Assembly (NCBI RefSeq): GCF_009834535.1
Contig: NC_045714.1
Location: 14,942,001 to 15,006,000, forward strand
Reading direction: 5' to 3'
Length of the DNA: 64,000 bases
Source of the DNA: Camelus ferus
Lineage: Eukaryota
This document shows positions 9,338 to 64,000 of the stretch, one piece after another. Each line of letters starts with the position of its first letter. The first letter of the stretch is position 1. The position numbers and the translations under genes were made by a program. Under the pieces are notes generated by a model. It was not told where the DNA came from. It worked only from the letters and a program-made list of their open reading frames with translations, and searched no databases.

Positions 9338-9592
9338 GGTAAAACGGGCACTGAGCGTGGTGAAGGCTGGACGCGGAAGCCGGGGCGGCAGGGGCGCTTT
9401 TCCTCTTAAAGAACTTCCACTGGACCTTGATGGCGAGCATCCAGTCGCTGACGGAGAGCCTCTTACAAGCGGAGGTGCAGACATGCGCCTGGAGGGGGGG
9501 CGGGNNNNNNNNNNNNNNNNNNNNNNNNNNNNNNNNNNNNNNNNNNNNNNNNNNNNNNNNNNNNNNNNNNNNNNNNNNNNNNNNNNNNNNNN

Positions 9593-16456
<6,864 letters not shown>

Positions 16457-50800: not shown

Positions 50801-52278
50801 GGGAAGTGGGCTTGGGGTCAGGGGTATGAAGTTGGAGGCCGAGTAGAATGTAGGTCTGGGTAGGCCCGCCAGGGCAGGCAGCTTCTTCCCCAGAGTTCAC
50901 CAGCAGCCCCTAGACAGTTTTCCAACTGAGACCGCTGGCCACTGGCAAACGAACACACTTCCGTCCCGTAGCCAGATCTGGACCAAGAGTTCCCTCCAGA
51001 GGTGGCCTGAATCTGCCCCAGCCTCCGGCCACCATGGGACTTGGAGTCCTGGGTCCTAGTCTCTGTTGGCACCTCACCCTGATACCCTCTCTGCAGCACC
51101 AAGGCTGGTCTGCCTCTGCCCCAGGAAGTTCAAGGCCTGGCCTTTGCCGGTGGGGCAGGGGGGAGGGGGCAACGGAGGGTGGGGGGACCAGCTTGAGTCC
51201 CAGCCTTACTTTGCACTTAGCAGTGCAGACTGGGGCGGGTCCCTTAGCCTCTCAGCTCCCATTTGTAATTCATCCAAACTTCACGGGGTTGGGACAACAT
51301 GAGATGTCCCAAGTGAAACCACTGGGTCTGTCTCACTGAGCTTGGAAGTGGCTGGGACCTGGGACAACAGCCAGGGGTGCTGGCTCCTTCTCCGAGGAGC
51401 CCCAGCCTTGTGGCCACGGCCTGCCAGGCCTGGGGGGTGCACTGGCCCCCTCCCACTGACACTCAGAGCTGGGAACCCACGTGGGGGAGGGTGCAAAAGG
51501 AGACCCAGGCTCTGGGATCCCTGCTGGGCTCAAAGCCCTGACTGAGAGCAAGCTGCAAAGTGTCCTGGCCTCAGGCACCCGCCCTGTGAGGCAGCGTGCT
51601 GACACCTCATCACTTAGGGGCCTTTCTCCTGGAGTCAGTGAGCTCTCCAAGTTATACCCCAGGACACACCCTCAGCCATCAGGAGCTGGCACGATTACTC
51701 CTCAGAGCTGAGGCCTCGGCCAGCCTGCCCCCCGAGCTGGCCCCGTCCCCAGCTGCCTTGTCTCTGAGAGACCTTGGTCCTCTGCTTTGCACCTGCAGTG
51801 AGGCGATGGAGGGTCTGCAGGACAGTGGTGTCCCCCCTGAGGTCTGGTGCTACTCAGACAGGATCACACTGAGTCCTCTCACCTGCTCCAGAGGGGCACC
51901 GCGACCCCATCCAGATGTGGCCGCACCACTGGTCAATGGCTGGGTTCTGCACAGGCTGTTCTGGCCCCAAGCGCAGTCTCAGCCCTGCCCTATGCCATCA
52001 GAGCCAACAACCAGTAGTGTTGGCCCCTCAACGTCCACTTGCACCCAGATCTGCAGCCTGCCCGCCTGGCCCTCCAAGCAGCCTCTTTCCAGAGAGATGA
52101 GCCCTCCTCCCCCGGCCCCCCGGGGAGGGCAGAGGGCCCAGCAGTGGGAGGGGCAGTGGGCCTGAAGTCACCCACACACAAACACTGCCCCCAGCGAGCC
52201 CTCAGGTGGGTGGCAGAGGCCGGTCTGATGGTTCTAGCTCATGCCCTCCCCCCTCCCCCTTCCCCCGGCTCCCAGACC

Positions 52279-53280
52279 ATGAATTTCCAGGTGACAGGCC
52301 TGGGCCTGGACAAAATGAAGCTGGACAGCCCCCAGTCCTTCCTGGACCAGGAGGAGGCAGAGGAGGCTGAGGACAGGCAGCTGCTGGAGCCCGAGGCCTG
52401 GCGGACCTACGTGGAGCGCCGCAACGCTCTGCGCGAGTTCCTGACCTCAGACCTGAGCCCCCAGCTGCTCAAGCGCCACCACGCCCGCATGGAGCTCCTC
52501 AGAAAGTGCTCCTACTACATCGAGATCCNNNNNNNNNNNNNNNNNNNNNNNNNNNNNNNNNNNNNNNNNNNNNNNNNNNNNNNNNNNNNNNNNNNNNNNN
52601 NNNNNNNNNNNNNNNNNNNNNNNNNNNNNNNNNNNNNNNNNNNNNNNNNNNNNNNNNNNNNNNNNNNNNNNNNNNNNNNNNNNNTGGACCACGGCCGCGC
52701 TGCGCTGGACTCCCTGCTTGAGTCGCCCAACCCTCGGCCCTTCCTGGCCGGCTGGGGGCTCGTGGAGCGGCGGCTGGCGGACCTGTCGGCCGTCATGGAC
52801 AGCTTCCTGGCCATGATGGTGCCGGGGCGTCTGCACATCAAGCACCGCCTCGTGTCCGACGTTGGCGCCACCAAGATCCCGCACATCCGACTCATGTTGA
52901 GCACCAAGATGCCTGTCATGTTCGACCGCAAGGAGTCGGTGGCCTACCAGGACTGGGTCAGCCTGCGCTGGTTCGTCACCATCCAGCCAGCTGTGCCCGA
53001 GCAGTTTGAGCTGCGCTTCAAGCTGCTGGACCCACGGACACAGCAGGAGTGCCTGCAGTGCGGCATCATCCCCGTGGCCGCCTGCACCTTCGACGTCCGG
53101 AACCTGCTGCCCAACCGCTCCTACAGGTTCACCGTCAAGCGGGCCGAGAGCTACACGCTGGTGTACGAGCCCTGGCGGGACAGCCTCACCCTGCAGACCA
53201 GGCCAGGGCCCCCCGAAGGGCCTGCCCCCAGTCGGCTGGGCAAGCCAGGCCTGCCCCTGACCACACCTTCCGAGAGATGA
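52279..53280 (+). CDS. FNDC11: Fibronectin type III domain-containing protein 11 (C20orf195), single coding exon, 333 aa, partly N
   Basis: Acceptor CCCAG|ACCATG; [39 protein letters not shown]; frame maintained across the N run; AATAAA at 53301 and 53313. Confidence 0.95.
52529..52684. other. N run (156 nt) inside the FNDC11 CDS
   Basis: Seen directly. Confidence 0.99.
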
Positions 53281-53695: not shown

Positions 53696-54228
53696 GTTAC
53701 CACCACCCCAGTTCCACCACCCCCAGTACCACCGCCCCAGTTCCACCGCCCCCAGTACGCTGCCCCTAGTCCGCCGCCCCAGGTACACCCCACCCCCAGT
53801 TCCACCGCCCCCAGTACCTCCGCCCCAGTTACACCGCCCCCAGTACCGCCGTCCCCAGTTCCACCTCCCCCAGTACCGCGCCCCAGTACCACCGCCCCAG
53901 TCCACAGCCCCCAGTTACCTCCGCCCCAGTTCCACCGACCCCAGTACCGCCGCCCAGTTCCAACGACCCCAGTCACAAGCCCCAGTTCCACCGCCCCAGT
54001 ACCTCCGCCCCCAGTTCCCACCGACCCAGTACCGCCGCCCCAGTTCCAACGCCCCCAGGTACCCGCCGGCCGCACAGTACCACCGCCCCCAGTTTCCAAC
54101 CGCCCCCAGTACCTCCGCCCACAGTTCCACCGACCCCAGTACTACCGCCCCAGTTCCACCGCCCCCAGTTCACCACCCCAGTTCCACCGCCCCAGTTCCA
54201 CCGCCCCCAGTACCACCGCCCCCAGCTT
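53696..54228. repeat. GC-rich minisatellite with ~14-15 bp unit CCCCAGT(T/A)CCACCG, roughly 35 degenerate copies
   Basis: Read directly between the FNDC11 poly(A) signals and the HELZ2 3' end. Confidence 0.9.
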
Positions 54229-55727
54229 CACCGAAGACAGGGGGCCCATGGCCAAGAGGACATTTCTTTTAACAAAAATTAAAGTCTTATCTTCTCCCCA
54301 AAAGAAGCTGAAGTTCACTGCAAGCCCCACCCAGGGTGACGCCCACCCGGGGTGGCTGAGGTCCCAGTAAGGGAGCCTGGCCAGCTCTTGTTTGGGTGGT
54401 CCTCCCTGCAGTCTGTCAGCGCTCCCCACCAACTTCCGGCGTCCAGCCCGTGTGGTGACCTGGGGAGTCTGTCCTCATCCTCTGTGGTCGTGTCACCCCC
54501 CAGATCGGCCAGCAGCTCGCTCCCTCCCCACACACACGTCCACTTCTGGAAGGCAATGTGGCCGTTGCGTCCACGGGTCCAGGAGGGACAGCCCTGGCTG
54601 TGCCGTGTGCCCCGGCTATGGCCGAGGAGTACTGTCAGTGGGAAGAGGCCCAGAGCCACCCCCAGTACACTGATAACTAGCTTTCCGCCCCTCACCACAG
54701 ACACCATGGTGGTCACCACGACAGACCTCTGAGAAGAGAAGGTGTGGCCAGGGCGGTGTGGCCAGAAGGACAGCCCCCCCCACACTGACACGTGGCTGGT
54801 TGAGGGGCCCCCAGCTGTGCCAGGAAGGCCCAGCACCCCCCTCCCCGGCTGTGGACAGTGCACTGCAGGGTTGGAGCGGTCTTAGCCTGGGGCCCCTCCC
54901 AGGTATCTTAAGCCTCTGACACATTCATGGTGCTGCGTGCTGGCCAGGGGCTAAGCCATACTGTCACACACACTGCGGCATCACACGGCAGGACACAGAC
55001 ACAGCCTGAGGGGCAGATCCAGGTCCTCAGTGCTGCAAAGAAACGCAGACCCAGCTGGGTGGCCCTGCCCTGGGAGCAGGCCTGAAGTTGCGAGAGGGCT
55101 GCAGAGCTCGGAGTGGAGCCCCACGTCCACAAGGGGCTCGTCACCTGGTTCCCCTGCCAGGGGCCAGTCCCTGAAGGACACAGGGGTGTGGGCCTGAGTT
55201 AGACGGGGCACTGATGGCAGAGAAAAGGCCCTGTCTTCCCTCCGGGGAGGCCTCCCTGCCTTGAGTTTGGGCTGAGGACCCTGCTCCAGTAAGAGACGCT
55301 AGCTTTTGGTTTATCTGAAACTAGAGAATAAATTGAGCCCCACAGACCACACTCAGTGTAGTCAGAGACAGTCCAAGAACAGCCCCGACGGGGTTCCCGT
55401 CCTGACCCCAAACATTCCCAGTGACACTAGGACTACCCCAATCCGAGATGCTCCCTGCCACCAAGTGCCCCAGTGCAGCAGCTCCGGAGGGTGGAGCGCA
55501 GACTCGTCCCCTTTCCTCCCAAGTCTGCACACAAGGTGAGGCTGGCCTGCTCCCAGCCCGGGTGGTAACTGTGCACGGCCACGGCTGGCCCCCAGTGACC
55601 CCTGCTCAGTCTGGCAGTGACCACTGAAGGCCTGTGGGTCCTGCTGAGAGGGGCCCGCCAAGGCAGTGGCAGAAGAGGGCTCTGAACTCTCCCGTGCTGT
55701 CCTGGCAGCCTGAGGGCAGTGAGGTCT

Positions 55728-58700
55728 TCAGGGAGAGTGTGACTTCCCATAGACTTTCACCTCCGAGGCGGGGCCAGGCTCTGCTGGGCCTCACAGAGGT
55801 CCAGGAGTCAGGACCAGACCGGGCAGCAGCGCAGAAGGTGGTGGTCTCCTGCGAGGGGAAGCAGGAGTCAGAGGTAGCCCTGCCAGCAGGAGGAGCGGCC
55901 CCAGCCCTCCGTCCCTGAGCAGCTCTCACCGATGACACAGAGCCCCTCTTGGGCCCGGGCGAGGGCCACGGTCACTTGGCTGGGGTCCGCAATGACGCCC
56001 AGGGAGTTTTTCAGCCAGTTCTTGGTCGGTCACGGGTCTATGTCACTCTTGTCACAGGTGCGGACCATGCTCACTATAACATAGTGCCACTGGCTCCCTG
56101 GGAGGCGAGGCGAGTCTGGCGAAGCCCCTGCCACCCACTCACCTGACCCCTCGCGCACAGGCCTCCCACCCGGTGCCAGCCCCACCCTGAATCTTGGTGA
56201 TGGAACACACAGTCACTCGTGGAACATCTTCCTGATGCTCAAGTCTCTTGCTGATCTCCGCCACCTGGGCGTTGTAGGGCGTGAGGATGGCAATGTCCTT
56301 GGGGCCCACTGTCCCCCTCAGGGGCAGCTCTCTGGCGATGCAGACCTGAGGGACCAGGGGTGCCGGTGAAGCCAGCCCTGATGTCTGTCCCACCCTGGGC
56401 TCCCTCAGCTCCTCTGCCTCCTCCCCCAGGGAGCCCTCCCAAGCAAGGGGTACCAGGGAGGGCCCGGGGGAGGGCCGCCACCACTGCCATCTCCTCATCC
56501 TTCGCCTTGGAATCCTCACCCTCTTCATCCGTAGACAGCAGCCGGCTCTTCTCTTTGCTCTGCAAGTGGCCAAAGATGACCGAGCAGCCCTTCTCGTCAG
56601 CGTGGCCCAGGACGCTGGGCGGCCTGCCCAGGCCCTGCCAGGTCTTCAGTTCCCTTTCGTAGAACTCCCCTGAGGGGAACGCACAGCTGTGCTCATGCTG
56701 GAAGGCGAGGACAGGAGTCAGGGCCAGGCTGGCCCTCGCCCACCTTGGGCCCAAGAGCTCTGGGCACTCAGCATGTGGTACTGCACATCCCACAGGCAGG
56801 CACCCCTGAAGTACCTCTGCCACAGAGACCGGTCCAGCCCCAGCTTCTGCAGCAGCTCACTCCTGACCACAGGCCGCAGCTGCTTGTGGTCCCCTAGAAG
56901 GACCACCTGGGAGGACAGGCAGGCATGTCCTGACCCCTCGGTCAGCAGCGCCCCACCCTGGAGCTGCCCTCCTATTCCCTGCACCTCTGCACCCCCAGGG
57001 ACACATGCCTGGGCTCTCAGCTCCTGCTTTACCCACCTTCTCAGCCTGGGAGAAGTTCACCAGGGGAATGAGGGTCTCTGGCTCCGAGGCCACACCCGCC
57101 TCATCCGCAAGGATCTGACGGATGTCCAGGTCCTCAAGGCTGGAGGAGCCCTCATGCCAGCACGTGAACAGGACAGTGCGGTGCCGGTCAAGCTCGAATT
57201 TCCAAGCCTGCCCTAGGACTTTCCTGTACCTGTGGGGACACCATATGGTCACCCAGGCTGCACCCCTGCACTCTAGGCCAGGAGGCAGCCCCATGGCTTC
57301 AGCTGCTTACCAGCTGAAGATCTCCTTGGAGAAGATCTCCCCTTCCTGCAGCCGGGCACCGAGGCCCTGACGTCAGCCGCATGGGCGTTGGAAGACTGAC
57401 GGACCCGGTGGTGCAGGGCGATGCTCCTGGGGGTGGGTGGCAGTGAGAAGACCTGTGTGAAGCCGTGTTGGCCCCTGCCCGAGGCAGGGCCAGCTGGACA
57501 GCCCCCGCCCCTCGCCTCCACCCTGTATAGAACAACAGTGGAGAGGCCGCACCTGAGGGTCTGGCTGGGCCTCCCCTCCTGAGGGGTCTTCTTAGGGGGC
57601 CCCTGCTGCCCACACCCGGCACTGGGCACTCAGTGGCCTCCTCCTGCTCCCTGTGCACACGAAGGGGCTTCAGCTTTGCCCTCCTGCTCAGGAGAAGTCC
57701 TGAGGAAGCCAGGGTGTGAGTGATGGCTCCCGGACCCAACTCCCCCGGGCAGAGCCCCTCCGGCTGCCCCGGTGCGCCTGCCAGCACGCCACCGACTGGT
57801 TGGAGGGGCTGCAGCACAAGATGGGCCCCCCCCCAAGCTGGCCACTGTGGGAGCCACAGGCTGGCACCTGCTCCTCGTTTGACGTGCAAAGCCAGTAGGC
57901 AGTGTGGACACCCAGCACCGCCTTCCCAGAGCCTGTGGGCAGAGCATGGGGTGAGCAGAGCCCCCACCTGCCTGCTCGGGCAGTCCCGCAGCTCCAAGGT
58001 GGGTCCCCCTGGTGGGCCCCAGATGACCGTGAACTGCTTCTTCAGAGCCTCCCTAACGGCCTCATTCTGGCTTGGGTTCATCTTGTGATGGCCTCCAGGA
58101 ATGTCGAAGGCTGGTCACTCCAGGAAACTGCTGGGGGTCCCTGAGGAAGGAGGCAGACCTCTGAGCACTGGCCAGGGGCAGGGCTGGAGAGGTGAAGCCA
58201 AGGGCTCCCCATCCACCCACCTCTGTGGAGGGGCTGCTGGCTGGGTTGGGGGGTGGGCTGGCCCTGGGCTATGCTGATGACCCACGGGGATGCACGCTTG
58301 AGCCGACACACAGCTTCGTCTTGGCAGCTGGGGCAGGTGGGGGTGAAGATGGATACCGGACACCAGCAGGATCTTCCCGGGCAAGGAGCACTGCCCACGG
58401 GCCACCACCCCAGGAGACGGGGGTTCCCAGCCCAACCAGCCCATCCGCCAGCCTCTCCCCGGAAGCCACTCACAGGCCCCGGAGCTGCCTGGGCAGCTCG
58501 TCGTCGGTGAAGCGGCCCCAGGCCTTAGCACCTCTTCCGGAACCACACCCATGGCCACGTGCTGAAGGAAGAAGGGCACCTACTTAGTCGGCCCAGCCCT
58601 CCTTTGGGCTTCAGTCCTCCGCCAGCCCGGGTGTCACCCAGGTATGTGTGTCAGGGTCAATGTTTCGGACAGGGATGACGCAGCTGGCCGGGGGCGTGGC

Positions 58701-61700
58701 GTGGCCAGCAGCCCTTCGAGTCGGATGCACGGGTAGCAGTGGCCAAAGCTGAGGTCGATGCCTCTCTCCTGGAGGAAGGCGGGCTCCAGGCAGAAGGTGC
58801 CCTGCAGCTGCCCCTGGGGCGTCCGCTCCGCCCCGCAGGGTATGGCCACATCCTGCAAAGTCACAGGATCGTTCTCGGCCGCAGCGCGGGTGGCCGACTC
58901 CAGGCAGCAGAAGGGCTCCCACACGTGGGCATCGTCTTCCACGTCCTGGTGCCAGTCCCGACCCACCAGGGGCACACAGGGTGAGAAGCCGTCCCCTGGC
59001 TGCTCCACGTGCTCCAGGCAAAGGCTGAGGCCAGGCGCCACAGTCCACAGCTGCAGGACCGGCTCCAGGAGCCCACGCTACAGGGCGGCACTGAGCTGGA
59101 GCTGTACGTGCAGTGTATCCCCACTGCCCAGCTCCCAGGCTGCCTCCACGAAGGGGCCGCAGGTGCTCCACCTCGCCTGTCCCGGCTCCCGCTGCTGGGG
59201 CTCGAAGCTGGGCTCGCCCCTCTGTCCGCCCTCGGCTTCTTCATCAGCCTCAGCAGCTGCTGCCACAGGGTGGAGTCCACAGGCTGGACACATGGGTCAA
59301 GCGGGGTGCTGGGCAGTGGGGGGCACTGCCCACCCACCTGCGTGGAGTAAGGGCGGCGCCGCCATAGGAGCTGCAGCCGCAGCCACCTGGCCGGCCACAG
59401 GAGTGCCTGGCCGGCTGCAGGGGTGCTTGGGTGGCTGCAGGGAGCTGCAGTGCACAGGGTCGAGGTCCAGAAGGGTCTTGTGGCTGGCTGGGAAGAACAG
59501 CTTGAAGCAGGTGTCCTCCGCGGCCACCACAAAGCCCAGCTTGCTTTGCAGTTGGGTCTTGAGCCAGGCGGCCAGGTTCAGGCCACAAGCCCAGTGCTGG
59601 AAGCTCTGGGCACACCTGTACTGGCAACTGAAGTCCTGGCAGAGCTCGTCAATGTCCCCGGGCATGTAGGGGGACCCTACCTGGCCCAGTGCCAGCAGGA
59701 TCTGCCGCTGCAGCACCACATCCATGTACCTGCAAATGGGTGAGGTGGCCCAGGTGTACCTGTCCACCTGCAGCGAGTAGTGGCCATCCAGCTCCATGCC
59801 CTGGCGGCCGAAGACTGTGTGGCCTTGGGCCCTGTTCAAGTCAAGGAGGGCAGGAGCCAGGGAGGGGTGCACGTCGTCCGTGGAGATGAGATCGCCAGTT
59901 AGATGAAGCCCTGGGCGTGGGCTGCAAGCTGGAGTTACCTCTAGACGGAGACCAGGACGTGGAACTGCAGGTCTGGGGAGATGTAGGAGCTGAAGCTGCC
60001 CAGCCGGTGGTGGCAGAGGTGCAGGGACAACGGCACCCAGTCCTCGTGGTCCTGGCTCAGGGCTCTGAGCCAGCCGAAGCTGGGCTCACGCTGCACCCGC
60101 AAGGGTGTGACCCCCTTTGTACCCTCACTGTCCACCAGGAATTTGGCCACCTGGCTGTTGAACTGGACCATGTACTCCTCAACCATCATGTGGGCCACGC
60201 GGAAGCCCAGCACGCTGTCCCCGTCCAGCTGCTTGTAATGACTGTTGCCCCTGAGGCGGCGCTGGCGCAGCATGTGGGAGAAGTAGCACGCGGCTGCCAC
60301 ACAGGCGTCCACAGAGTCCAGGCAGGCTGGCAGCTTGAGGCCGGCGCCCCGGTGCCCCCTGATCACCTGCTCCACCTCTGTACAGGTCAGCTGGTGGTCA
60401 GAGCAGATCACAGCGGGTGCAAAGCACTCACTCTTGAGCTGGTTGCTGCCCTTCTCGGTCGTCAAGAAGAGGGAGACGGCTAAGTGGTCCTGGCCTGGCA
60501 GGAGGCTGGCTGGCAGCATGGACACTGCTCCTGGTCAGGGGCGTAGATGGTGGCCCCCCCCACCTGCAGGCCTCCAGGCCCAGCGCCCCCGTCCCTGGGC
60601 ATGCAGCTGGCCACATCAGCGATGTGCGTGGCCACCTCATACGTGGGGCCCCGGTCCTGGGCGCTGATGGCGCCGTCCAGGTTGCAGGTGAGCGGGTGTC
60701 CGTGGCGAAGGCCAGGAAGCTGCGGCAGCCCTCCAGGCAGCTGGGCGCCCGGCTGAGCTCAGCGTGGTGCCTGTGCAGCGCCTCGCGGACCGAGGCCGGG
60801 TGTGGGGAGGCTCCTTCAGCCTGCAGGCCAGGTCCAAGATCTGGAGACTGCTCCCAGGTGGTGGCCTCGGGCAGCACCTTCTGGAAGCCCAGTGGGTAGT
60901 AGAAGCGCTCCCGCCACAGAAGGACACACACCCAGAAGAGGCGGTGGTGCCAGGCCTCCACCGAGAGTGGCTCGTGCCCCACGCGCTGCACGCGGCCCTG
61001 CAGAAGGTGGTGGACAGGCACCTGCAGCGGGTCCTGCAGCCCAGCCACGAGGACCTTGGTGGCAGAGCCATCGATGGGGGTCATGACGCAGGGTTCCCAC
61101 TCGTCCACATGGCACACGAACGCCAGCTGGCGATGCTCCCTCTGGTGAATGCTCAGCACGCGGCCCTGGGGCCACCTGGCCCAGCCGAGCACCTGCACCA
61201 GCGCCTCGTCCCCAGGGAAGGCCATCCCGCAGTGCAGGCGGCCCTTGAGCTGGATGGGCCCAAACTTCCCGTCGTCCAGCGGGACGCTCTCACCTCCCGG
61301 AGGCTCTCCCTCAGGAAGGCGTGGCAGCAGTGCTGCTGGGGCCACTTGTGGAGAAGTTTCTGCTGTTTGGCTTCCGGCAGGTTCACATACTGCCACGCCG
61401 GCGGGGGAGACAAGGGCCGGGCGAAGCTGTCCAGCAGCCCATCCTCCTGGACGGTCACTGTCACGTCCCGGCTGTGGTCCAGGAGCTGCTGCGGGCGGGG
61501 CTCGTTGCTGCTGAGCTCCCTGTCAAAAGGCCAGAAGCCCACAGGGCCCTCGGGCTCCCTGATCTCTGGGGCTGACGGTCCTGCCACAGCGCCTCTGGGG
61601 ACCATGCCCCTGCCACATGTGCTGTGGCCCACCCCCCACTACCCCCTCCTCTGGAACAGTGTCCCTGGCATCTGCTGCCACAAACCTTTCTGTTTCTTGG

Positions 61701-64000
61701 GCCGCAGGCTGCCAGCAGCTGGCCCAGCTCTGCTTCTGGATCTGCTCCAGAGACAGGCCCTCGGGGCAGACGGCGCCGTGCTCCACACACTCACGGAGGA
61801 AGCTCCCCCAGAGCTTGCTGCAAGCCTCCAGGGAGCAGAGGGCCACAGCATCGCCCACGGCCACCACCTGGGCCTGTGTATGGGTCATGACGGTGCTGAG
61901 CACGCGGGCGTCCGTGAAGCACCCTGGGGCCGGTGCCTCCGGCTCATCAGGCTGTGGGTGGTGTGCAGTGTGCCCAGCACCACCACCCGGAAGTCTCACC
62001 TGCAAGGGGGGCAGTTACAGGGTCAGGCTGGGCCAGAAGTGGGAGGGGAAGGGAGGGGGGAGGGGAGGGGGGGGAGGGGCCCCACTTCCCCCAGCACCGA
62101 TCAACCACCTGGCAGATTCTCAAAGCTGCCCACAGACACCTGGCCCAGGTCCCGCTTCCTCAGCTCCTGCCTCATCGCTCTCACTGGAGACACACCACCA
62201 GGTCAGGTGAGGGGCCCCAGTGAGGCATAGCGTCCCCTGCCAAGGACGGGACCCTGGTTCCCAGGCCCTGGGAGGTGAGTATCTGAATATCTCAGCCTCT
62301 CAGTATGGAAGGAAAGCAGGCTGAGGAGGCCTACCAGGCCACGGGGGAGGGAGGCTTCCCCGGGAGACGGGGCTTGGGGGAAGCTGCCCTGGGCGGCAGG
62401 GTCTCACCTGGGCCCTGTGGGACACAACGCGGTGCTCCTCTGCTCCTGGTGGCCCCAGCACTGGGGCCAGGAGTTACAGACCTCCTGTACCTTCTCGACA
62501 ACCTGAAGAACCTCGGCTGCATTCAGCCAAGACGTCGTGGAGACGTCGCACTGGGGCTGCCCGCCACGCGGCAGAACTGGAGCGGGTACCACCGGGGTGG
62601 CCAGGGATCTTGCCGCTGGCCTGGATGGAGTGGCCGCTGGCTAGGGAGACGTGGTCGGAGACAAAGCGGACAACGGTCTGGGTGGAGCGGTAGTTCTTGT
62701 ACAAAATAGTGCAGCTCCTCTGGGCGACCTGGAGCGTTTGCTGCCGGTGGTGCTCGAGGAGGCGGTGCCGCAGCACGTCTGCCCCGGCGCCCGGCCACAC
62801 TGAAGAGCCGGGCGTGCCCTGCAAGTGGCTGCCCGCCAGCACCACTCGGGTGCCGGGCGCGGCGTAACGCAGGGGCGTGAGCGTCTCCCACTCCAGCATC
62901 TGGGAGGCCTGGTCAATGAGGATGTGGGAAAAGAAGCCAATGGGCACCCCGGGCTGGCGTGTCCAGGAGGTGCTGGCCAACACAATGTGGTGCCGCTCCA
63001 GCTTGGCCCAGGTCGGCAGGCGAAAGGCCTGGTGGTCCTCGGTCAGGCAGCAGTACCTCAGCGTGGCCGCGTCCGTCAGGCTGGGTGGGCAGTCCGTGTG
63101 CACCACCCAGAGGGGAGCGGCCTCAGGGTGACCGCTGCTGACGTAGGGGTGGAAATACTCCGCAGCGTAGGTGTCGGCCACCCTGTGGGGGAGAAGGGCA
63201 CAGCGCCTGTCTGCTAAAGTGCCTCCCGTGCGTCCCCCCTGCCCAGACAACAGGCAGTCCAACCCGGCAGCACAGGGGACAGACAGAGAAGCAGGAGGTC
63301 AGTGCCCGATGAGAACCAGACAGCAGCAGAGCCCTGGGGAGGGCGCAGCGTGGGCCGGGCCACCAGCGCGGCCCGAGACTGGGGTTGACCCCGAGCAGCC
63401 AGGGAGCAGCAAGACCTGGCCCCACCTCTCCGAAGGGGACCACCAGCCAGGGCCTCTGCCTGACACGGGCCCCTGGAGCCCCAGTCCCAGTAGCCAGTCA
63501 GCCCTGGGCAGAGATGGGGAGCCCCGTGCTTGAGCAGCTGTCCATCTGGGGGGAACTATGACAGGATTTTCAGAACACCCAAGTCTCGCCCCAGGAAATG
63601 CTGGGTGGGTCCAGCCACAACCCTACCCACCACTCTGCCTGGCCCATGTTCCTCTGTGGGCAGGAGACCATGCACCGGGCCTGAATCACAGGCGTCCCCT
63701 GTCCTCAGCCCGGTACTGACTGTCAGGTAGACTCTCAAATGCCTGGGACTGGCCCCAGGGGCTTCATTGCCACCCAGCCCAGCCCCCACCCTCTCCTGGA
63801 ACTAGCCCCCGAGATCTCCAGTGAACCCGGGAACCAGCCCGAGCCCCAGACCCCCAGGTCCCTCCTCTTCTCCTGAGGTGAAGGCCGGGGAGGCGGGAGA
63901 GCAGCCCAACAGCCCCAGCTCACCTGTCGGTTCGCGTACAGAGGAGCACCTTACGAGGGGCTGGCAGGCGACCTCCAGGGAGGCCATGGCCAGCGTGTAG
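55728..64000 (-). pseudogene. HELZ2: Helicase with zinc finger 2 (PRIC285), unitary pseudogene; 5' part lies beyond the window
   Basis: Collinear remnants of helicase 1 (FFSHILID, ENYR-like KNYRST), RNB (YTWATSPI.RYMDVVLQRQ) and helicase 2 (NPSQ, DEAG, GDHKQLRP, ILTPYNAQ). Stops at 59941, 59935, 59899, 59078, 58611, 58584, 58115, 56030 and 55808; many frameshifts; donor GT>GG at 58008. Confidence 0.95.

Follow-up and report, generated by a model that had tools for sequence, protein, structure and literature searches.

The window analysed here (64,000 nucleotides (nt) from Camelus ferus, NCBI RefSeq assembly GCF_009834535.1, contig NC_045714.1, positions 14,942,001 to 15,006,000 of the forward strand) carries EEF1A2, PTK6, SRMS and FNDC11 and, on the minus strand of positions 55728–64000, a region related to HELZ2. 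This region is very probably the orthologous, intron-containing HELZ2 remnant of a Camelus genome, i.e., a unitary pseudogene. HELZ2 is conserved from corals to humans; its product degrades structured RNA, reportedly restricts several RNA viruses and acts as a PPAR coactivator in lipid metabolism. The mammalian protein was characterised as interferon-induced and as combining two UPF1-like helicases with an RNB 3'-5' exoribonuclease (PMC10516660). According to the same paper, HELZ2 is conserved across vertebrates and was lost in some invertebrate lineages, e.g., insects, and no mammalian loss is reported in it. Elements of the LINE-1 (long interspersed element 1) type are restricted by HELZ2 (PMC9839780).

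The identity and the position of the remnant were established by several approaches. Pieces of open reading frame (ORF) on the minus strand of 55728–64000 matched the Pfam families OB_HELZ2, RNB, AAA_11 and AAA_12. A tblastn search with tenrec HELZ2 returned collinear high-scoring segment pairs for query residues 865–2898, with switches of frame within contiguous DNA, and a frameshift-aware alignment of pig HELZ2 to the window covered 1997 codons at 62.6% identity and contained nine in-frame stops. When 1.84 billion representative proteins were scanned with one 322-residue piece, all matches were HELZ2. The 15 introns occupy the same protein positions as in rhinoceros HELZ2. A distance of 2.4 kb separates the FNDC11 exon from the HELZ2 3' end, and SRMS, PTK6 and EEF1A2 come further along; the other flank (GMEB2) lies beyond the window edge, and synteny was read from the FNDC11 side. 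The remnant, its domains and the synteny anchor are as follows:

55728–64000, minus strand: HELZ2, very probably a unitary pseudogene, 3' part of about 70% (pig residues ~796–2866; Pfam, tblastn and alignment), the 5' part lying beyond the window
61940–64000, minus strand: remnant of helicase 1 (UPF1-like; Pfam AAA_11 on piece 62477–63262)
60690–61396, minus strand: remnant of the OB-fold (OB_HELZ2; Pfam)
59300–60690, minus strand: remnant of the RNB exoribonuclease domain (Pfam and alignment)
55770–58150, minus strand: remnant of helicase 2 (Pfam AAA_11 on 56721–56984 and AAA_12 on 56142–56573)
52039–53280, plus strand: FNDC11 coding exon, the synteny anchor, open apart from an N run (52529–52684)

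A preliminary description of this DNA had named the gene as HELZ2, which was borne out by the Pfam domains and the pig alignment. It had also described a syntenic, intron-retaining unitary pseudogene, and the adjoining FNDC11 and the 15 orthologous introns agree with this. A processed (retrotransposed) pseudogene was ruled out, since the introns are kept and the position is syntenic. An apparent 46-nt 'intron' at pig residue 1237 turned out to be a variable coding linker, exonic in rhinoceros, and was not taken as a lesion.

Lesions were called with a protein-to-genome dynamic programming aligner written for the task, which permits frameshifts, codon gaps and introns. The frameshift-aware alignment, which the preliminary description had suggested, was run with seven intact mammalian HELZ2 proteins at two frameshift penalties each (14 runs) as a measure of robustness, and the lesions were recovered. 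In the control with the intact rhinoceros gene, no stops were found in 2857 codons, and the only frameshifts were alignment artefacts (one compensating pair and one call, in a variable linker). The region 55728–64000 has no N runs, and its G+C content is 64–67%. The stops were compared with those of the dromedary (C. dromedarius CM016645.2) and of a wild Bactrian camel scaffold (C. ferus KB016513.1):

59941–59943, minus strand: stop TAG, pig residue 1791, common to C. dromedarius and C. ferus
59935–59937, minus strand: stop TAA, pig residue 1793, common to C. dromedarius and C. ferus
59899–59901, minus strand: stop TAA, pig residue 1805, shared; its frame hinges on the adjacent frameshift (6/14 runs)
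59078–59080, minus strand: stop TAG, pig residue 2081, shared with both other camels
58611–58613, minus strand: stop TGA, pig residue 2244, shared with both other camels
58580–58582, minus strand: stop TAG, pig residue 2255, shared with both other camels, beside a frameshift
58115–58117, minus strand: stop TGA, pig residue 2375, shared with both other camels
56030–56032, minus strand: stop TGA, pig residue 2806, shared with both other camels
55808–55810, minus strand: stop TGA, pig residue 2853, shared with the dromedary and past the end of the C. ferus locus

Eight stops were supported in 12–14 of the 14 runs. Nine stops had been listed beforehand, eight of which stood at their exact coordinates; the ninth lies at 58580 instead of 58584. 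The number of robust frameshifts was 16–19, 1-nt deletions for the most part. This compares with at least 15 mostly −1 frameshifts counted previously, and essentially all positions named then were included. Besides one near 59215, the frameshifts were located as follows:

63955–63959, minus strand: frameshift near 63957, 1-nt deletion (14/14 runs)
62549–62593, minus strand: frameshifts, two 1-nt deletions near 62590 and 62555 (14/14 runs each)
62428–62432, minus strand: frameshift near 62430, 1-nt deletion (12/14 runs)
61935–61947, minus strand: frameshift near 61940, 1-nt deletion (14/14 runs)
61284–61299, minus strand: frameshift near 61295, 1-nt deletion (14/14 runs, two adjacent clusters merged)
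60804–60850, minus strand: deletion pair (2 nt and 1 nt, near 60847/60816), frame restored after about 10 codons (12/14 runs)
60682–60691, minus strand: frameshift near 60685, 1-nt deletion at the RNB active-site motif (14/14 runs)
60518–60527, minus strand: frameshift near 60527, 1-nt deletion (14/14 runs)
59895–59913, minus strand: frameshift near 59900, 1-nt deletion (14/14 runs, merged)
59386–59442, minus strand: frame-shifting 20-nt tandem duplication (2.8 copies), frameshift near 59400; one copy fewer in the dromedary
58675–58681, minus strand: frameshift near 58675 (14/14 runs)
58513–58586, minus strand: frameshifts, 2-nt deletion at 58586 and 1-nt deletion at 58516
57598–57604, minus strand: frameshift near 57600, 1-nt deletion (14/14 runs)
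57362–57365, minus strand: frameshift near 57362, 1-nt deletion (14/14 runs)

Splice sites and catalytic motifs were altered as well:

58007–58008, minus strand: splice donor GT to GG, shared with the dromedary; the C. ferus sequence has a gap there
56770–56771, minus strand: splice donor GT to CT, common to all three camels
62900–62914, minus strand: helicase-1 motif II DEAAQ to DQASQ, with loss of the Walker B glutamate, identical in the three camels
60663–60677, minus strand: RNB active-site motif LDDALS to LDGAIS (catalytic Asp to Gly), just after a 1-nt deletion
59726–59746, minus strand: RNB motif TSPIRRY to TSPICRY
57919–57933, minus strand: helicase-2 Walker A GTGKT to GSGKA

With catalytic residues replaced in helicase 1, RNB and helicase 2, the earlier claim of lesions in every domain was upheld. 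An Asn in place of Asp at the first position of the RNB motif was not counted as a lesion, since this is the normal mammalian state (PMC10516660). A functional HELZ2 enzyme was ruled out because there is no continuous ORF and neither the helicase Walker A/B motifs nor the RNB catalytic aspartates are intact. The camel remnant thus shares with functional HELZ2 of human, mouse and pig the gene, the chromosomal neighbourhood, the exon-intron layout and the order of domains, but its ORF is disrupted, and in each of the three enzymatic domains at least one catalytic motif is replaced.

The same lesions were found in the other camel assemblies. By blastn over 8–9 kb, the window was 98.8% identical to C. 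dromedarius CM016645.2 and 99.3–99.6% identical to C. ferus KB016513.1, and was by this identity closest to the Bactrian/wild camel lineage. An independent assembly might have offered an open HELZ2 frame; the two other Camelus genomes carry the same stops instead, base-for-base identical in 9/9 cases in C. dromedarius and in 8/8 cases within the C. ferus locus. Nearly all frameshifts and the mutated catalytic motifs were also common to the three Camelus genomes. In the 5' half of HELZ2, which is beyond the window, additional frameshifts and two additional stops (pig residues 181 and 225) were present in both other camels. The 20-nt duplication at 59386–59442, with one copy fewer in the dromedary, indicates a lesion that arose after the camel species split, and species-specific lesions are as expected of a pseudogene under continuing decay. 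Relative to both other camels, the window carries one extra base at each of 63882, 63489, 62302 and 58174, of which only 58174 is coding, and this position is not among the robust lesions. Private indels of C. ferus KB016513.1 include a 13-nt insertion (window-equivalent 60554) and a 30-nt deletion (58031); its HELZ2 locus holds 82 N, and part of these indels may be assembly noise.

The neighbouring genes had been described as free of such damage, and spot checks of EEF1A2, SRMS and FNDC11 exons showed intact coding sequence: an EEF1A2 exon was 100% identical to residues 108–207 of the solved eEF1A2, and the SRMS catalytic-loop exon was intact. Three N runs (9505–9692, 14310–14473 and 52529–52684) lie inside or beside coding exons of EEF1A2 and FNDC11. 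Between FNDC11 and the HELZ2 3' end, a minisatellite occupies 53698–54233 (530 bp; periods of 15, 29 and 57 nt; about 36 copies of CCCCAGTTCCACCGC), with long proline-rich ORFs on both strands.

The deposited camel proteins have to be read with care. The best match of the remnant, at 97% identity, was a 790-residue C. dromedarius 'Helicase with zinc finger domain 2' (KAB1262810.1), which clusters with a 1246-residue C. ferus 'hypothetical protein' (EPY87820.1). The deposited annotations cut the HELZ2 locus into four gene models (C. dromedarius CM016645.2:618536-635352; C. ferus KB016513.1), as gene predictors do on meeting lesions that have to be bypassed. Thus, KAB1262810.1 and EPY87820.1, which entered UniProt/nr as HELZ2, are artefacts of annotation pieced together around the lesions, and they were the only camelid proteins retrieved. 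Neither the 1.84 billion representative proteins nor a database of 5.8 billion sequences yielded an intact HELZ2 protein from a camelid. The best 120 full-length HELZ2 matches of the pig query came from bats, carnivores, perissodactyls, pangolins, primates, rodents, afrotherians, marsupials, a monotreme and birds, and none from a camelid, ruminant or cetacean; likewise, no full-length alpaca, ruminant or cetacean protein was among the listed matches (best 120) of the tenrec, pig and camel queries. This absence of such proteins from the best 120 is suggestive but no proof. Two scans of metagenome contigs for HELZ2 copies from host contamination found none. An exact look-up of the 322-residue camel ORF in public read assemblies gave no match and hence no evidence of transcription from this source. 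The protein databases speak indirectly against another, intact copy at a different place in the genome.

Selection on the gene was estimated by a three-taxon parsimony count with camel, rhinoceros and polar bear. The ratio of nonsynonymous to synonymous substitution rates (dN/dS) was 0.73–0.77 on the camel branch, as compared with 0.31–0.37 for rhinoceros and 0.33–0.35 for bear. The corresponding ratio of proportions (pN/pS) for the window versus the dromedary was 0.92, and HELZ2 has drifted neutrally since the camel species split. On reconstructed ancestral codons, 2.4–3.3% of random substitutions create a stop, and the observed stops need about 0.04–0.06 substitutions per site of neutral time. 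This is 10–15 times the per-lineage divergence of the two camel species and about one fifth to one quarter of the synonymous distance of the camel branch (0.21). At the mean synonymous rate of the whole branch of 78 million years (My), the stop density corresponds to an age of about 15–22 My; calibrated on the camel-camel divergence, it corresponds to more than 40 My. Mixing of dN/dS values yielded 35–49 My. That dN/dS gives a longer neutral time than stop density was attributed to relaxation before inactivation. The loss clearly predates the Camelus radiation; it is probably tens of millions of years old and, as we infer, probably close in age to the separation from llamas and alpacas, or older. 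The term 'fairly old' used in the preliminary description was therefore appropriate, given both lesion density and dN/dS.

A HELZ2 remnant with introns kept was also found in the Franciscana dolphin (Pontoporia blainvillei) on the 4.2-kb contig PGGH01342675.1; it has eight stops and numerous frameshifts, and large deletions have removed up to about 200 codons. Contigs of a second species (public read assemblies SRR4292264, SRR20997935 and others) share most of the Pontoporia lesions. To judge from these contigs, this species is probably a cetacean; its assignment as a ruminant was dropped, since the pattern of branch lengths (6.2% shared-derived versus 2.5–3.2% lineage-specific) agrees better with another cetacean. 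No stop or frameshift was common to camel and cetacean HELZ2, and where lesions lie close together the nucleotide events differ. Since no lesion is shared, the losses are independent, and the cetacean loss is probably the older. Like the camel remnant, the cetacean pseudogene is intron-retaining and unitary and concerns the same gene within Artiodactyla, but its lesions are entirely different and its decay is much heavier. The loss had been called lineage-specific beforehand: this holds for the camel event but not for the pattern, as cetaceans lost HELZ2 separately and evolution was already accelerated in stem Artiodactyla. A HELZ2-like sequence from DRR285720/DRR285721 with about 80 in-frame stops was discarded, as it derives from bisulfite-converted reads; with TAG aligned to Gln/Arg and 34% G+C, it represents neither an altered genetic code nor a pseudogene. 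One further short mammalian HELZ2 fragment was intact and uninformative.

Many breed assemblies of pig contain an intact HELZ2, and the gene also features in pig transcriptome papers. Of the strictly polarised amino-acid changes, 42 fell on the artiodactyl stem and 249 on the camel lineage, as compared with 98 in pig and 32–39 in rhinoceros, bear or bat, i.e., lineage-specific changes in pig were about three-fold those of any of the latter. The 42 changes on the short stem imply that the acceleration began before either loss. As to ruminants, a literature search for cattle and sheep found no study naming HELZ2 or PRIC285, and HELZ2 is not mentioned in the text on core interferon-stimulated genes of a ten-species study including cow and sheep. 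On such circumstantial grounds, the ruminant HELZ2 status is suspect. Relaxed constraint in the ancestor of even-toed ungulates, followed by at least two losses (camelids and whales) and possibly a further one in ruminants, with pigs as the sole artiodactyl keepers, is proposed tentatively and with chances that fall just short of even.

These data allow the alternatives to a decayed ortholog to be weighed. That the gene is truly intact and its lesions reflect errors of sequencing or assembly in GC-rich DNA might be suspected from the G+C content of 64–67% and from the four single-base insertions that the other two camel assemblies lack. However, the same stops and most frameshifts occur in both of these assemblies, the neighbouring exons are clean, and indel errors cannot produce nonsense substitutions, catalytic replacements or a dN/dS of 0.73–0.77. 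This explanation is effectively refuted, and its probability is negligible. It is very improbable, too, that this is a decayed duplicate and that a functional HELZ2 lies at another camel locus: the remnant occupies the ancestral site next to FNDC11 with all introns kept, and the databases lack an intact camelid HELZ2 although annotated Camelus genomes contribute to them. Preservation of most splice sites and all introns could fit a locus still in use, as an interferon-inducible non-coding transcript or for a short N-terminal zinc-finger fragment. The chance of this is small, since several frameshifts and the two stops noted above (pig residues 181 and 225) interrupt the 5' half in the other camels, and pN/pS of 0.92 speaks for neutral evolution between the camel species.

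Some points weigh against the reading of an old unitary pseudogene. The four window-only single bases may be assembly errors or private variants. The two dating approaches differ two- to three-fold, with dN/dS giving more neutral time than stop density. Finally, the alpaca reference annotation contains HELZ2 as a coding model of at least 1440 codons, in which an alpaca resequencing paper lists a nonsense variant in heterozygous state (PMC10873959). The date is uncertain on this account, as the model reflects either a better-preserved New World gene or a repaired model. The alpaca model, together with the 15–22 My from stop density at the whole-branch rate, would suit a recent loss restricted to Camelus, i.e., after the split from llamas and alpacas, rather than an old pan-camelid loss. 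In opposition to this stand the camel-camel calibration (more than 40 My), dN/dS mixing (about 35–49 My) and the absence of an alpaca HELZ2 from the listed matches in both databases, in which an intact protein would be expected among the best matches. A recent loss is thus somewhat doubtful, though its probability is appreciable.

Under the reading as a unitary pseudogene, the following sequence of events may be proposed. Accelerated, probably relaxed, protein evolution starting in stem Artiodactyla would have preceded inactivation, and HELZ2 would have been inactivated well before the Camelus radiation, roughly 15–45 My ago. The reading frame is broken, with nine stops and at least 16 frameshifts in the window and more in the 5' half of the other camels. 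No full-length HELZ2 could then be made, and camels would be without this interferon-induced 3'-5' exoribonuclease/helicase. Cetaceans would have lost HELZ2 separately, and pigs would have kept it.

The loss of HELZ2 in camels adds a new case to a familiar class of events. MX1/MX2 were lost in toothed whales, and IFIH1/cGAS-STING in pangolins. IFIT2 is a pseudogene in Cetacea (PMC5747502). As in these cases, an antiviral gene has decayed in a single clade and is conserved in others; in contrast to them, HELZ2 has antiviral, retrotransposon-control and PPAR-coactivator roles, and its loss recurs within one order. A literature search found no published report of camel HELZ2 loss; the tables of large automated gene-loss catalogues, which quite possibly list it, were not covered by this search. 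The finding gains in value from the independent loss in cetaceans and from a possible one in ruminants. For users of databases, it is a warning that the deposited camel 'Helicase with zinc finger domain 2' proteins are unreliable.

As natural knockouts, camels and whales provide natural experiments on what HELZ2 is needed for. The camel loss bears on comparative studies of antiviral responses, camels being virus reservoirs. If ruminants also lack HELZ2, this would matter for livestock virology. If pigs are indeed the sole artiodactyl keepers, a clade-wide change in the control of structured viral RNA and of LINE-type retroelements would have taken place, and among the artiodactyls affected would be the main livestock species as well as camels, a reservoir of MERS (Middle East respiratory syndrome) coronavirus.

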